Source of the DNA: Neoconidiobolus thromboides FSU 785
Taxonomy: Eukaryota; Fungi; Entomophthoromycota
DNA: 64,000 nt
Reading direction: 5' to 3'
NCBI GenBank assembly: GCA_025603075.1
Contig: MU626274.1
Location: 1-64,000 of the forward strand
The notes beneath the pieces were generated by a model. It did not search any database and was not told where the DNA came from. It saw only the letters and a list, made by a program, of their open reading frames with translations. This document shows positions 22,427 to 30,836 of this stretch, one piece after another. The position numbers and the translations under genes were made by a program. Numbering within the stretch: the stretch's first letter is position 1; each line of letters begins with the position of its first letter.

Positions 22427-23520
22427 TTAATTTTTTTGAACAATAGCAGATGTTTGATTGTTTTTAGCAATAAGCTTTCTTAACCCAAGTAAAAGCATAG
22501 TAACTGAGAAGGTGATTTTTTCCTTAACTAAAAATAAAATAATTTGAGATAATACGGCTTTCGAGATTTGAGCTTGCATTCCCTAAATATGATAAATAAA
22601 TTATACGCTTATATTTGAATTAGCTTACCTCATACCATCCAATTAAACCCTTGTTTTTTAAAACTCTTTTTAATACATCAATTGAATCTTTGTAAGGTTT
22701 ATATTCTGGATCATCAGTAACATGTTTAGGAGCTTTCCATTGTAATCTGACCTTGGCCATGATATATGGGTAAGTTACTATGGTAGCTATAGTTTTAGAG
22801 ATAGCTCCAATTACGAAAATTTCAAGAGCAGTCAAGTCTCTCTTTGCTTTAAGATTAAGCCAGTATCCTTTACACTTTTCAAAAACACCATATGTAATTG
22901 ATGGGTTTATCACTAAAACTAAAGATGGTTTAAGTCCTCTCCAAAGTCCAGAATACCCATCTTCTTCAATTATATCTTTCCATGTTTCAATCATACTTTT
23001 ACGATGTTCAGCTAAAGTAGTCTGCTGGCGAGTAACCGCAACAGAGACAGGTAAAGTGCATAATTGTGCTAAAATCCCAGCAACACCACCTACACTTAAC
23101 TCAGCCCAAGCAGGTAAAGTGGCATGCATCTCTCCAACCTTGGGCGTAGCGCGTTTAAGGTAATGATTTCTTATAAAAGTATAAAAGTAAAAATAAGCAA
23201 AGCTATTGGCCATTACTTGTAAAACACCAGTAGGTAACCCATTATAAACTCCAGTTATTCCTTCTTTTTCATAAACTCTTTGAATAACTTCTAACATAGT
23301 AGTTGGTCTTTTCTCACCTTCACTCTTTTCATCTGGATTTCCAACTGGAACTTGTAATACAGTTTTTGCTCTTATTTTGTTAAAAAATATTTATAAAGTT
23401 ATATAAAGCTTACAAATCTAATGGGTAAGTAGCTGTAAGGGCAAAAGCAGCTCCAACACCCCCAGATAAAGCAGCTCCAAAACTGGACCAGCTACTTGGT
23501 AAATCTTTTGAAAGTGACAT
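22427..23520 (-). CDS. ANT1: Peroxisomal adenine nucleotide transporter (Ant1/PMP34-like), 3 exons
   Basis: TYPLD, FAYFYFY, LVLVINPSITYG, KTIATIVTYPYIMAKVRLQ, GMQAQISKAVLSQ. Confidence 0.85.
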
Positions 23521-24561
23521 TTTGTATTCTAAATAATTATAAAATAACTCTTATTTCCGTTATTTTACGCTTTAAATTTACTTCGACGACTTTAAAACCA
23601 ATCAAAAACTATATTACAGAATTATTAGATCAAAGCCACATTAAGTAGCTAAATTTAGTTTAAACTCCCCATTTTGAATAGAAATTTAATTGATATTTTC
23701 CAAGCCTCATAATATTAACATGTTTCTATCATTTTTCTATTAAAACGTAATAATGATTATTTAGGTTTCTTTACGAACTTAAAATCAATCGAGCTTTTCA
23801 TTTCATTCTTAAAGGTAGTATTTGAAGTATTTATAACGCGGTTAAAATCCAAGTCCCATAAAATTCAAAGATCATACAAGTAGGTAGAGCTTTAAAATTT
23901 AGCTTTAGATACTTTATATCAAAATATTGAATCTTTTTTAATATTAGCTTTATATTATAGAAACTCCATAGGGCGTTTACTATACTAATGCTATTATGGC
24001 TGTTATAATTACTGCTTAGACAAAAATTCAAACTTAACAAAGATTAACTCAAAATAGTAATCTGGTGATTACACGATATATCCTTTTAAGATAAGGACAT
24101 GTTTGAAGATAAAAGAATATTCAAGCTTATACTTACGCCAATTCAACTAAAAATACTTATAAATTTAAACCAATAATATTAAGACAATTGTAATTTCATA
24201 GTAATAAGTAAATCAAACTAGATTACTCATTTTCTCTATTAAATCTTCAAATTGATGTAGTTTACTAAACTTTAATTTGCCTATTTTAACACAAACTTGG
24301 TTGTTTGGCAAAAGCATATTTTATATGCCAATCATCTATTCCATAATTATATCCTTAGGGATAGATATGTGCTAACGATTTCCCCTTTTTTAAAATGCAT
24401 AGAGTTAAAGTCCAATAAAAATCCAACTTAGTATTATGTAAAGGGGAGTCAAAAATCAGCTGATTTTTGCATAAACTTCAATACGTTTAAATTAAGACTC
24501 AAATTTGTAAATTTATTTTTAATTTTTTTGTAAATAAAACGTTAAACCAAAAAATTTACTT

Positions 24562-27500
24562 ATGTCATCATCCCAAAAAGCAGCGGTCTTAGACCCTGAA
24601 CATATTGGACTTCACTGCGAAATTAACTTTGAGAACACGTTGAAACAGAGAGTCAAAGAGCTACTAAAGCCAAAAAACGATTTGTAAAATTAATATACTT
24701 TAATCAATTTTTACTGACAGTATTTTGATTAAGGTTTCCAGGAAGTGAACCTATAAATTTCAATTCAAGTCACCTCGAACTACTTTGTAATGAAGATTAT
24801 TATGTTTGTGAAAAAAGTGATGGTGTAAGGTATCTTCTTTTAAGCACTCATACTAAAGAAGGGCCATCTTGCTTTTTGGTAAACAAAATTATTTACAATT
24901 TATTAAAAATTAATAAGTCTAGATAAACAAAAGGAATTCTTATCAATACATAAGTTCGCTTATGCTACCATGCCGTGAAAATTTGACTACATTTCAACAT
25001 GAATCACTTTTAGATGGTGAGCTTGTTATTGATGAAGATAAAGTAACTGGGAAGGTAAAGCATTTAAATTCAACCAAATAATCATCTAACATAATGTTTT
25101 AGAAATCAGCTCACTTTTTAGCATTTGATTTGATGGTTTATAACACGAATCTCATAACACATCGCTCTTTCGCTACTAGATTAGGAGTAATTTGTTTTAT
25201 AAATAGCTTTTTATATTTAATTTTTTCAAGATGTTACAACAAGAGATAATTGCTCCTTTAGATAAATTCTTAAATTCAAATCCAGAAATATCAAAAAAAC
25301 AGCCATTTAGGTACATTGTTTAATTATTTTTTATTTCGTCTTATTAAGTTTTCTAGTATCAAATTAAAAAAAATGGAACGTTCTTATGGATTAAGTGTAG
25401 TATTATCGAATATCCCAAACTTAAAACATCCTAGTGATGGATTAATATTTACACCAGTTGGGCTCCCATATAAAAGCGGGGTTTGTAGCAAGTTGTAAGA
25501 ATCTGTTTATTTGCAAAATATCCTTTATTTAATATTTTAGGCTTAAATGGAAGCCACTCGAAAAATTAACCGTGGATTTTCGAATCCAAGTCACTTATAA
25601 TATGGATAGAAAGCCAGTATATAACCTCCAGGTAATGCACAATGGTAGTTTAAAGGTTATATCACCCTTACAACTGTCTCCAGATCAATATGCAAAGTAA
25701 CATATATAATTTATAGTTATTTTAATCATTAATTGTTTCTAAGGTGGAGGTTATCTCCCCCAGAAGGAAAGATAGCGGAATTCAGGTAATATATTTTATA
25801 AAAGTATTATCAAATACTTTAATTTTTAGGTGGGACCCAAATTGGAGAGTCATGGTGATAGAAAAAGGTTATGCTCCACAAACAGTAGTTGGGGGATGGG
25901 TGTAAGCGTTAAACATTTTACACACAAAAGTATCATTAATCTAGTTTCCAGTTTCATAAAATTTCGTTTAGATAAGAATATACCTAATAATGAACAAACG
26001 ATCAGGGAAATTCTTAAAATAATTGAAAATGGAGTTTCTAGAGAAAAGGTAAATATTTGAGTTAAAAGTTTACTTGTTTTAATTTTTTTCAAGTTAGAAC
26101 AATCAATTGAAAAGATCAGATCTCAGTGGAAAGAGAGGGAAAGGTTGTCAATTGGACAAGGGTCATATTATGGGTAAGCCTTTATAAATACAATAGTTAT
26201 GAATCTAAAATAATTAGCCGAAATGATAATCTTGACTTGAAACGTAATACTCCAGCAAAATCTTTAACTGTAAGGATAAATGACATTAAATCAGAAGATA
26301 AAGATCATAGCGTCAATAGTCAAGAAGATGCAAAAACTCCAACAAGTGGAGCTAAAATATTAGATTCATTAAAGGAGTCACCTAGTCCTACGATAAAAAA
26401 CGAAAAGGATGTAAATGAAAAAGATTTATTTAAAATTCCAATCGGTAGTAAAGTTGATACAGCGGAGAAACCAAACGAAGAAGAAAACAGAAATTTGTCC
26501 GACTTTAGTAACTTAAAGCAATCGCCCAATACTGATAAAAATTTAATATTGATTGAAAATTCCAATAAGAAAGCAAGTTCTTTAAATGGTACTCAAATGG
26601 AACTTTTGGATAGTAAAAATCCATCAATAAATTCAAAAGAAGCTTCAAAAAGAGCCTATTCAGTCCCAAATATTAATACAAAAAACTCATTCATACCACA
26701 AAAACGGCGAATGCTTTCTGGATCAGACTTTAGTACTCTAAACAGTGTTTCTTTAAAATCCATAGAAGAAGTGTATGAAAATAATAATGGTTTGATTTCC
26801 GGAGATAGCATTAGGGCTGAAGGATTGGATCTGGTTAGAAGGGAAGGATTTTTAAGTCATATACCAGAAAATCAAAATCAAGAAGATCATAAATCTGATG
26901 GTGTTAATAGGTTGGAAACGATTGGACAAGAACCTAAAAGTATGGATAGTAGCTTAGTGGATGACGCAGATTTTAATAGGATAGAGAATTTTGAAATCAA
27001 ATATGACCAAGCTCCAGAAGCAAAAAACAAAAATAGTGTGAATGAACATGATGGCGTAAACACAATGAAGCATGAAGATCAAACGTATATTGGTATTGAT
27101 AATTATAATTCAAAGGATACAATGAAAAATAGTAATATAATACTGAGCGCAGATAACTGTGAAAACAATACCAAGTTTGAAGATAATGAGATAAAGGACG
27201 TGATTATCAACAATAATATTGGGGATATTGATATTAAAAATAGATTACTGACAAAAACTAATTCAAATAATAAAAATGATTTAGAAGAAAATCCCGTATT
27301 AGAAGCTACCACAAAGGATCTTGGTTATAAAGATCAGGATCCTAAAGAATCAAGAGACTGTAACGATCTGGAAGAAATTAAAAATGATGTCCAAAACCAG
27401 AATGAGGATCTTACAAAGCCAAGTAATCTTAATACACTAGCAGCAGTTATGAAAAGCGCTCATGACCAAGCTAATAGTATCAAAGAATCGACTAATCTTT

Positions 27501-29254
27501 ATGCAGTAAAAGCTACTGAAAATGGAGACCTTGAAAATTCAAGCAATGTCCGTGAATTAGCAGCAACTACAAAGGATGTTAATAATCAGAATCAGGATCT
27601 TGCAAACCCAAGTACTGCCCAAATAGGACACCGTGGCAACACTGATATAATTAATAAAAGTCAAGGGTATTCAAGTACTAATAAAAGTGCAAAGGCTAGT
27701 AATATTTTTATGTTGATGTCAAGTAACGATTTTAGTCCACTTCCCAAAGTAGCAGAGGTTTCAAATATTCCAGCTTCAACTACCTCAAGATTTGTACAAG
27801 AAAAACAAGCAAATAGTGAAAATAAAGTAATGGTTGAGGACATAAAACGATCAGATAGAACATCATTAAATAATCACCCAAATAATATGGCAAGTAATGG
27901 TATTCTAGGATCAGAAAACTCGGCTAAGAATATAAGCAAACTTGGTGATGGAAATGACAGACCTTCTAAAAAAGGACGTTCTAACAAGAACAATAACCCA
28001 TCGTTTGGGATATTCAAAAATGAAAAAACGCCAAATATGTTACAAACTCAAAATAAGGATCTGCCTTATGAAAACAAAGAACCTTTGAAACATATAAAGG
28101 ACAAATTCAACTCTACTTCAGATACTAAGGTAAACATTCTTCCTAAAATTCCGGATAATCCAAATGTGACTCAAGATTCTAAAGTACAACCGAGTTTTCC
28201 ATCGCATCATGGGATTCAAGATGGGCGTACATATTATCGTCCACTTGCATTAATACCTCCTCGCGCTCTTGAACCGCAAACAAACTCTCAATCTTCTCTA
28301 AATTTGCACGATATCCCAGCTGAACAGTCGCATTTCAGACAGTCAAGCTTTACTGAATTAAATGTTCGTCCTTCTCAAAATCCGCATGATATCCCAACCG
28401 AGCAACCACGGTTTAGGCAGTCAAGTTTTGCTGAGTTGAGTGCCCGTTCTTCTCAAAATTTGAGTAGTATTCCAACTGAGCAATCACACTTTAGACAGCC
28501 AAGTTTTCCTGAATTGAATCCCCAAACATCACAGAACTTAAGTAGTATTTCGAATGAACAACCACGTCTAAGGCAGCCAAGCATCACTAAACAGAATGTA
28601 CGAGGTGGATATGTTTATCCAAATTTCCCACGCGGGGTACAAGTGATACCAAACGTATCACAAGCAGGACAACAAGTGGTGTATTCTGATGCATTACATA
28701 GAAGAGGAAGCGTAGGGGTTAGGATGGTTTCAATCCAAAGACCAATTCCAATTCCAAGAGTTCAAGAAGTTTTATCGTCCCATCAAACTGCGGTTCAAAA
28801 CAATCATCTTGCACACTTAGGGTTTGTACGTAGAGCAAGTCATTCCCAGCATATTTTTAGGCCTTTAAACATGGATAATATGATTCACTATATGCCTTCA
28901 AGTTTAGCTCATAGTACAATGGCTAGCGTTAGGCCAACACCCTCAACATTTAATATTAGGAGTCATGTACCAAGCCCAAATCCCAACCTTTCTGAGCCTT
29001 CATTTCATGTTCAACCTCAAGTACCATTCTATTCTCCTCAATTACCAGATTATAATCAAAACCAGGGTCAAGTTTATGCAAATAACCAAAGTTATTTTCA
29101 AAGAACATTTCAATCAGAGGATGTAGATCAAACCCAAGAACAAATCCAAACTCAGCCTATAATTCAACAAGAACCTTCAAAAAGTACGCCTGATCATAAA
29201 CCTAAACCTGCACCAAGGCAGTCTAAGGGTATGTTAGACTTTATTATGAATTAA
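24562..29254 (+). CDS. CEG1: mRNA capping enzyme guanylyltransferase with a spliced ~1010-aa low-complexity C-terminal extension (short form stops at 26177)
   Basis: FPGSEP, motif I KSDG, LLDGELV, FLAFD, DGLIF, LKWKP, FRLDK..PN. Intron 26174-26217 joins the core in frame to ORF 26126-29254. Confidence 0.88.
28304..28590 (+). repeat. Four tandem 78-bp (26-aa) coding repeats
   Basis: HDIPAEQSHFRQSSFTELNVRPSQNP / HDIPTEQPRFRQSSFAELSARSSQNL / SSIPTEQSHFRQPSFPELNPQTSQNL / SSISNEQPRLRQPSI. Confidence 0.85.
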
Positions 29255-29930
29255 TCCATTTAAATTTCCAGCTTAATATTATAAGAAATATAAAATGCTA
29301 TTTTAATATCACTTAACTTAATTAAATTGCTAAGAATCCAAAATTTTCTCAAAATAAAGATTATTTATTTTAACAAATTTAACTTCATACATGTGAACAG
29401 CAATATATTTAGTTATTAATTTATTTATTAATTCAAAGTATTGTCATATAACAGATAATAGTTTTCAATAGGACTATAGGACAAAATGGTATTTTATTAT
29501 AATGATAAATATAATAAAAACTGAAGGTTTTGGCAGTTCAAATGTAAATATATGAATAGTGCAACTGGTGTTTAAAGTGTCTCTAGCTTTTAATGTTCTT
29601 AGGATGTGATATTTAATCCTTCACTAATTTACTTACAAATATAAAACTTTTATTAAAATTCATATAAATAATACGGTTGTTATTTATGTAGCTTGGCTTA
29701 TATATTAAATCTTGCTATAATAAGTAAATCTTTATTTTAATATTAATATTGTTTTTTTATAAATGAAAGAGTTTAATTATAAAAAAATGTTGTTTTAGAA
29801 TTTAATTAAACATACTTAGTATGGTAAATATTAGCTTACTAAAAGTAGCGAAATTTAACCTGATCAAATACAAACATAATAATTTGATATGTATTAAAAC
29901 TGTTTAATTGAAACTAACTACTTTTATGCA

Positions 29931-30836
29931 TTACCAACATTTGATGCTTTTATAAAACATCTTTACTTCTTTTGCAATACCAGTGTGTAATATTAAAAGT
30001 AAGGACGAATTGGCTAAGATTCCAATAACAAATAATATTTGCCCAACTTGATTAATAATAACAATTGTTTGGTTTAATTCTCCCCAACTATAATGAAGTG
30101 AACTTTCTAAAAGATGAAATAAAACTGATCCCGACATACAAACAACATATACTACTAATATAATATATAATCTAATTGTAGCTGAATTTAAACTGGAAAT
30201 CCTATTATCTTTTCCTGACGTTGGAACTGAGCTTATTTCAATTTGAATAAAATCTTTCATATATGTAATATTCCTGGCTAATTTATAATAACAGAATGAT
30301 ACTATTAAAACTCCAATAAAAAAACTTAATACTAAATAATGATATGTAATTGAACCAATGATGGAATCAGTTACAGATAACATGCAAATTAAATCTGAAG
30401 AAGCAGGTGCCATTAAATTTTGAGTAGCACAGTAAAGTATTAGCAATATAAAAGATATAGCATTTATATGTAAAGGTAAAAAGATGTATTTTGGTAGTTT
30501 AATTTTGAGCACTTTACACAACCTTTCTGCAGCTAAAAACACATTCAATTGAACTTCAAAATAATACACAGCATTAATCAAAAATCCGAGGATTTGGCAT
30601 CCTAAAGTGATATGAATCAGACGTTGTTTAGTCACAGAATAGTAAATATAATCGATCAATACTACTATTGGAACAAAGTACTCTGCTGCTGCTACTGCAA
30701 TAATTAACTTTAAATCCCTTGTTATTGGTTTGATGCGTAAAGCAAAGTAGATTAAAAACATATTTATAAATATAGTGACAAACATTAGAGCTATAGTAAG
30801 GTAATGGAAATAATTATATGAACCCTGAGTTTCCAT
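29931..30836 (-). CDS. Intronless class-A-GPCR-like 7TM protein (301 aa)
   Basis: Seven hydrophobic segments, Cys at top of TM3 (LGCQI), ERL at the DRY position, ECL2 Cys (LICML), TM7 ANSSLL. Confidence 0.8.
   Translation of the reverse strand: METQGSYNYFHYLTIALMFVTIFINMFLIYFALRIKPITRDLKLIIAVAAAEYFVPIVVLIDYIYYSVTKQRLIHITLGCQILGFLINAVYYFEVQLNVFLAAERLCKVLKIKLPKYIFLPLHINAISFILLILYCATQNLMAPASSDLICMLSVTDSIIGSITYHYLVLSFFIGVLIVSFCYYKLARNITYMKDFIQIEISSVPTSGKDNRISSLNSATIRLYIILVVYVVCMSGSVLFHLLESSLHYSWGELNQTIVIINQVGQILFVIGILANSSLLLILHTGIAKEVKMFYKSIKCW

Follow-up and report, generated by a model that had tools for sequence, protein, structure and literature searches.

Does the stop codon of a capping enzyme gene end the protein when it lies inside a splice donor, or is it spliced away so that the message reads on into a much longer coding region? 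This question is raised by a guanylyltransferase gene of Neoconidiobolus thromboides FSU 785 (Entomophthoromycotina; genome of 24.6 Mb, 27% GC), found in positions 1 to 64,000 of contig MU626274.1 (C17), a stretch of 64,000 nucleotides (nt) that is called the window here. An initial annotation of this DNA had placed the TAA that closes the last core exon within the donor of a 44-nt intron, proposed that removal of this intron fuses the enzyme in frame to a 3-kb open reading frame (ORF), and taken the arrangement as a possible regulated switch between a normal-length enzyme and a tailed form. The best explanation is probably a single gene whose intron 11 is constitutively removed, which would join a guanylyltransferase core of 383 amino acids (aa) to a lineage-specific, disordered tail of 1,011 aa, while a canonical guanylyltransferase is encoded elsewhere in the genome, on contig C32.

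Gene model and the stop codon in the donor of intron 11

The assembled gene starts at the ATG at 24562 and comprises 12 exons and 11 introns (Table 1), with a predicted spliced product of 1,394 aa; the tail of ~1010 aa and the total of ~1400 aa that had first been estimated were thus close to the values obtained. Neither a frameshift nor a stop was found in any of the 12 exons, and the introns, all of them GT...AG, measure 50, 44, 48, 44, 46, 46, 47, 44, 50, 45, and 44 nt in order, with phase 2 in 7 of the 11. Exon 11 reads LEQSIEKIRSQWKERERLSIGQGSYY followed by two bases of a Gly codon, and the TAA at 26175-26177 falls within the GTAAGC donor (26174-26179) of intron 11. Removal of this intron, the 3′-end of which is TAATTAG, joins GG to C as a Gly codon, and the frame entered in this way has no stop between 26111 and the TAA at 29252-29254. 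Both the intron coordinates and the exact frame match to the 3-kb ORF given in the initial annotation were therefore confirmed.

In most respects intron 11 is typical of this gene. Its length is modal and identical to that of introns 2, 4, and 8, its GTAAGC donor is also found at intron 9, and leave-one-out splice scoring ranked its donor as the strongest of the 11. Candidates of the form GTAAGN...YAG with a length of 39-50 nt occur at only 0.31 per kb on the plus strand. The stop inside intron 11 is a generic result of phase-2 GTAA donors and is no mark of regulation, because retention gives the same immediate in-donor TAA (G followed by GTAA) in five of the ten other introns, namely introns 1, 6, 7, 8, and 9; a stop within 20 codons is reached upon retention of any of the 11. 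The claim that the in-intron stop signals a regulated switch found no support on this ground. Phase 2 in 7 of the 11 introns, together with the retention stops in all 11, would be consistent with selection that lets nonsense-mediated decay remove unspliced messages in a genome of tiny introns.

A regulated switch, in which retention of intron 11 gives a normal-length 383-aa enzyme and splicing gives the tailed form, nevertheless deserves consideration, since the retained form would end one residue from the end of the C32 paralog and would thus be a complete enzyme, and since the acceptor of intron 11 scored as the weakest and its 3′-end is pyrimidine-poor. This pyrimidine fraction (0.40), however, equals that of intron 2, which interrupts the catalytic domain, so that an active enzyme requires its removal. 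Moreover, the retained message would have a 3′ untranslated region of ~3 kb, and a region of this length makes the transcript a likely target of nonsense-mediated decay. A short isoform from the window gene is also less necessary because the canonical short enzyme is already encoded on C32. With the in-donor stop being generic, the short enzyme present elsewhere and the long untranslated region expected upon retention, such a switch is less likely a priori, and we consider it unlikely.

Coding character of the tail and its probable junction with the core

The tail frame is the longest open frame in the window. Using the stop-codon fraction of 0.084 in the window (27% GC) as the base for chance estimates, the probability of meeting no stop was ~3e-39 over 1,012 codons and ~5e-7 over 166 codons. 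The first in-frame ATG of the tail is its codon 127 (26597), and the preceding 126 codons contain none, so that the ATG-less tail start is open far beyond chance. With a codon-usage score trained on the other long ORFs in the window, tail codons 1-126 obtained +0.37 bits/codon in frame versus -0.51 and -0.87 in the other frames, and the in-frame score was +0.33 to +0.38 bits/codon in every tail segment and +0.24 in the core. As codons 1-126 score as coding, coding would therefore start at the acceptor and not at the internal ATG. Furthermore, the tail contains four tandem 26-codon repeats, for which Tandem Repeats Finder reported a period of 78 with 76% matches and no indels. Among these repeats the proportion of synonymous differences (pS) was 0.58-0.93, which is nearly saturated, that of nonsynonymous differences (pN) was 0.15-0.40, and the pooled pN/pS was 0.37 in the tail frame compared with 0.68 and 1.28 in the wrong frames. 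Judged from these ratios, the repeats were being translated while they diverged.

Between the core and the tail ORF there are zero spacer nucleotides and hence no promoter room, and the ~1.1 kb upstream of the gene's own ATG is free of long ORFs, the nearest listed ORF ending at 23390. The lack of both an early ATG and a promoter space of its own, which the initial annotation had attributed to the 3-kb ORF, was borne out by these data. They bear directly on the view that the locus holds two genes, the paralog stopping at the TAA at 26175 and the 3-kb ORF being independent. That view can point to the equivalent end of the C32 paralog and to a separate deposited model of 573 aa within the ORF, K502DRAFT_66684, but this model is assembled from a part in another frame (26415-26507), a part in the tail frame (26570-28129) and a second part in another frame (28182-28250), whereas the tail frame continues without a stop and with a coding signal across both predicted introns of the model and for ~335 codons past its end. 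K502DRAFT_66684 thus borrows two other frames, ends well short of the constrained ORF and looks like a forced ab initio model; no encoding contigs are on record for it, and a whole-tail word search matched only this partial model of the species itself. Given also the 126 codons that score as coding without an in-frame ATG, the absence of a spacer for a promoter and the exact fit of splice signals and phase, two separate genes are a rather improbable explanation.

Sequencing-run contents were also compared with the locus. The run X1 contains 0.82 of the 31-mers sampled from 24500-29300, and the predicted share is 0.80-0.82 for intron-free RNA of the core plus the whole tail, 0.19 for a core-only RNA, 0.64 for a tail-only RNA, and 1.0 for DNA of the same strain; the observed share lends weak support to a message that covers both parts. 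Separately, 9% of the words sampled from this interval occur in an RNA-seq run from fish gut and 5% in a metatranscriptome run from soil, and the share is 16% in three runs from another organism, perhaps a relative at ~5% divergence.

Because the intron is typical, the ATG-less start is coding, promoter space is lacking and the tail is under coding constraint, fusion of the core to the 3-kb ORF via intron 11 is very probably the best reading of the locus and is well supported by the sequence. Several points weigh against the single gene with a disordered tail. The leave-one-out acceptor score of intron 11 is the weakest of the 11, and core and tail stay unfused in the deposited annotation. A word search with the first 300 tail residues for junction-spanning, transcript-derived proteins found none, and metagenome scans with the tail start and with a 31-nt exon 11 pattern found no contig. 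The share of X1 cannot separate a spliced (0.824) from a retained (0.840) intron 11 at a sampling error of 0.017, and taking X1 as RNA is only a guess. The fusion has no comparative support, since no relative bears the tail, and the disorder call depends on one single-sequence fold.

Downstream of the gene, a minus-strand ORF at 29931-30836 (301 aa), with the look of a multi-pass membrane protein, converges on its 3′-end, and the gap between the two stops is 676 nt.

Table 1. Positions of the gene parts, tail features, deposited model and C32 micro-exon (window coordinates unless prefixed)
Feature	Position	Strand	Remarks
Core exons 1-11	24562-24683, 24734-24878, 24923-25054, 25103-25186, 25231-25310, 25357-25494, 25541-25696, 25744-25785, 25830-25901, 25952-26048, 26094-26173	+	
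Guanylyltransferase core	24562-26173	+	11 exons, 1,148 nt; 383 aa including the completed split Gly codon
Exon 11, last core exon	26094-26173	+	Follows AG at 26093; ends in phase 2, 13 residues past WKER
Intron 11	26174-26217	+	44 nt; GTAAGC donor and TAG acceptor; CTAAA as branch-like site, 13 nt before the 3′-end
Exon 12 (tail)	26218-29254	+	3,037 nt; 1,011 aa, then stop TAA 29252-29254
Two predicted helices	27371-27493	+	Tail residues 385-398 and 401-425; only secondary structure predicted in the tail; pLDDT ~50, weak evidence
Four tandem 26-codon repeats	28304-28615	+	…IPxEQxxFRQ[SP]SFxEL…SQN with RxxS cores
Deposited model K502DRAFT_66684 (P0001)	26415-28250	+	573 aa; 100% match to the window
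C32 micro-exon	L001:1445-1452		8 nt, ATTTCCTG; flanks TTAG and GTAAAT; precedes the fourth C32 intron

The canonical enzyme, the divergent core and the orphan tail

A PF01331 search of the species' own genome listed only contigs C32 (148 bits) and C17. The C32 gene, K502DRAFT_323578 (P0002), has 4 introns and encodes 381 aa; its protein shares 50-62% identity with the enzymes of Massospora, Entomophthora, and Basidiobolus, among which it is nested in the tree with a support of 100/100 within Entomophthoromycotina, the search for relatives covering only proteins of ~150-485 aa and thus being unable to show that longer capping enzymes are absent. The initial annotation had given the fungal Ceg1 and Pce1 enzymes a length of about 400-460 aa and an end soon after the OB fold, and a normal fungal enzyme does stop about where intron 11 begins, as seen from the length of the C32 protein and those of the solved chains (395-461 aa). 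The window core is only 35% identical to the C32 protein over 367 aligned positions, lies on an end branch of 1.94 (median 0.55), and belongs to no supported group of the tree, so that it does not group as a Ceg1 ortholog. Its tree position beside Amoeboaphelidium was rejected as long-branch attraction. On these comparisons, C32 carries the organism's canonical capping enzyme and the window gene is a fast-evolving, divergent second paralog, a relationship that the initial annotation had missed.

Three of the four C32 introns coincide with introns 1 (phase 2), 2, and 10 (both phase 0) of the window gene. As intron positions are shared, the two genes are cellular paralogs that arose via DNA-level duplication, and a viral or retroposed origin of the window paralog was rejected for the same reason. 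The C32 micro-exon supplies FP(G) residues, which in the window gene, having no micro-exon, are contiguous with exon 2. The two proteins align end to end and their C-terminal exons share WKER, after which the stop follows at 12 residues in C32 and the in-donor TAA at 13 residues in the window gene. In the alignment the C32 stop is no more than one residue away from the in-donor TAA, which suggests that the TAA at 26175 is an ancestral stop bypassed by an intron capturing downstream sequence. The proposed course of events is that the capping-enzyme gene was duplicated at the DNA level and one copy, that on C32, stayed canonical, while the coding region of the window copy was probably extended in the 3′ direction by an intron spanning the ancestral stop, which left the former TAA within the donor of intron 11.

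The enzymatic features of the core were assessed by searching the exons singly against profiles and the Protein Data Bank (PDB), the joined protein being used only for the length, the C32 alignment and the tree. Against PF01331, exon 2 scored 37.8 bits versus a cut-off of 29.6, and exons 3 and 6 scored 23.4 and 26.6 bits; the three exons cover profile positions 1-41, 43-83, and 144-188, respectively. Exon 10 alone scored 25.6 bits against PF03919 (OB fold; cut-off 26.5), matching profile positions 82-112 of 115, and exons 7-9, taken singly, give no score against this profile because of their shortness and divergence. All six nucleotidyltransferase motifs, I, III, IIIa, IV, V, and VI, are present as KSDGVR, DGELV, FLAFDL, DGLIFT (SDGLIFT), LLKWKP, and FRLDKNIPN and are aligned with the C32 protein. 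Motif I, KxDG with the catalytic lysine, is found as CEKSDGVR in exon 2 and aligns with CEKSDGIR of 4PZ6 and CEKSDGVR of C32, and motifs III, IIIa, IV, V, and VI align with their PDB counterparts too. For exons 2 and 6, the fungal alpha subunits 4PZ6, 1P16, and 3KYH are better matches than the enzymes of metazoans or of Chlorella virus. Since all motifs are intact, the core has most likely kept the ability to form lysyl-GMP as its intermediate. A Cet1-type triphosphatase (PF02940) is encoded by one gene in the genome, at C47:53767-54491 on the minus strand. This gene is heavily split, with many stops inside the PF02940 match, which implies many short introns.

The initial description of the tail as N/S/Q/P-rich and disordered was upheld, its composition being computed (S 11.6%, N 11.6%, K 7.1%, P 6.9%, and Q 6.4%) and its disorder predicted, as a single-sequence AlphaFold2 model of the tail had a mean pLDDT of 33. 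Tail residues 201-400 are acidic. Proline is abundant in the last 370 residues, where the six PxxP motifs are located together with two RRxS sites and the four RQ[SP]S repeats. When the tail was searched exhaustively with HMMER among 1.84e9 cluster representatives, no relative was found beyond the partial model of the species itself, no Pfam family was found for the tail, and the protein atlas held no usable look-alike. A Herpes_UL17 Pfam match of 13 bits was sub-threshold and was rejected as noise. The tail is single copy in the N. thromboides genome and has no paralog. It is thus predicted to be a disordered, lineage-specific orphan. Most likely, though with low certainty, it serves as a regulatory region or a flexible tether. 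Its C-terminal third is Pro-rich and bears RRxS/RxxS sites as well as the four conserved 26-aa repeats.

The very long branch of the core and a tail without relatives or a predicted fold could be expected of a decaying or neutral duplicate, that is, a paralog drifting to loss whose tail is functionless, translated read-on sequence. Against this, all 12 exons are intact, the six catalytic motifs are all kept, the 3-kb frame has stayed open although stops make up 8.4% of codons, and the pN/pS among the repeats is 0.37; decay is accordingly judged improbable. It is very unlikely on present evidence that the window gene provides a second capping activity with a task of its own, such as re-capping in the cytoplasm or the capping of a special transcript class, in which a phospho-regulated tail tethers the enzyme to condensates or partners and incomplete removal of intron 11 sets the ratio of tailed to tail-less forms. 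If true, this would be the fungal equivalent of the specialised capping paralogs.

Relation to known capping enzymes and significance

The closest fungal messenger RNA guanylyltransferases are Ceg1 of S. cerevisiae (3KYH), Pce1 of S. pombe (4PZ6), and Cgt1 of C. albicans (1P16). Like these, the window gene encodes a stand-alone, fungal-type guanylyltransferase without a fused triphosphatase, composed of a nucleotidyltransferase domain and a putative OB domain, with motifs I, III, IIIa, IV, V, and VI. Unlike them, as they have 395-461 residues and end soon after the OB fold, the window protein would run 1,011 residues further. Moreover, the window gene is not the Ceg1 ortholog, and it would reach the usual end at ~380-460 aa only if intron 11 were retained. 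With the C32 enzyme of the same genome it shares the domain order, introns 1, 2, and 10 and the C-terminal WKER exon, but it has 11 introns and a tail, whereas C32 has 4 introns, a micro-exon and 381 aa.

Two other systems offer partial parallels. In trypanosomatids, Cgm1 is a guanylyltransferase fused to a methyltransferase, a second paralog with a large C-terminal extension beside the canonical enzyme. The extension of Cgm1 is a folded cap methyltransferase domain, whereas the window tail has no detectable domain. The nearest precedent is found in mammals, where the Pro-rich C-terminus of RNGTT binds the SH3 domain of Nck1 and thereby assembles a cytoplasmic capping complex (PMC4138027). The window tail resembles it as a disordered, Pro-containing C-terminal appendage on a guanylyltransferase, which in RNGTT is a docking site, and the likeness is an analogy only, with no homology implied. 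The RNGTT segment differs in being short and carried by a bifunctional triphosphatase-guanylyltransferase, and neither sequence similarity nor SH3-binding evidence was found for the window tail.

A fungal guanylyltransferase paralog with such a tail was not found in the open-access literature. The deposited annotation of the locus is wrong and needs correcting, as a single gene has been split and a forced model placed within its tail. In the N. thromboides genome, a stop within a donor should not be taken as a regulatory signal. Fungi are assumed to possess a single guanylyltransferase, which is short and essential. For the capping machinery, a second paralog whose active site is intact and whose tail is almost three times as long as the enzyme would be an unusual architecture, and the gene would show cleanly how an intron can extend a coding region over its old stop codon.

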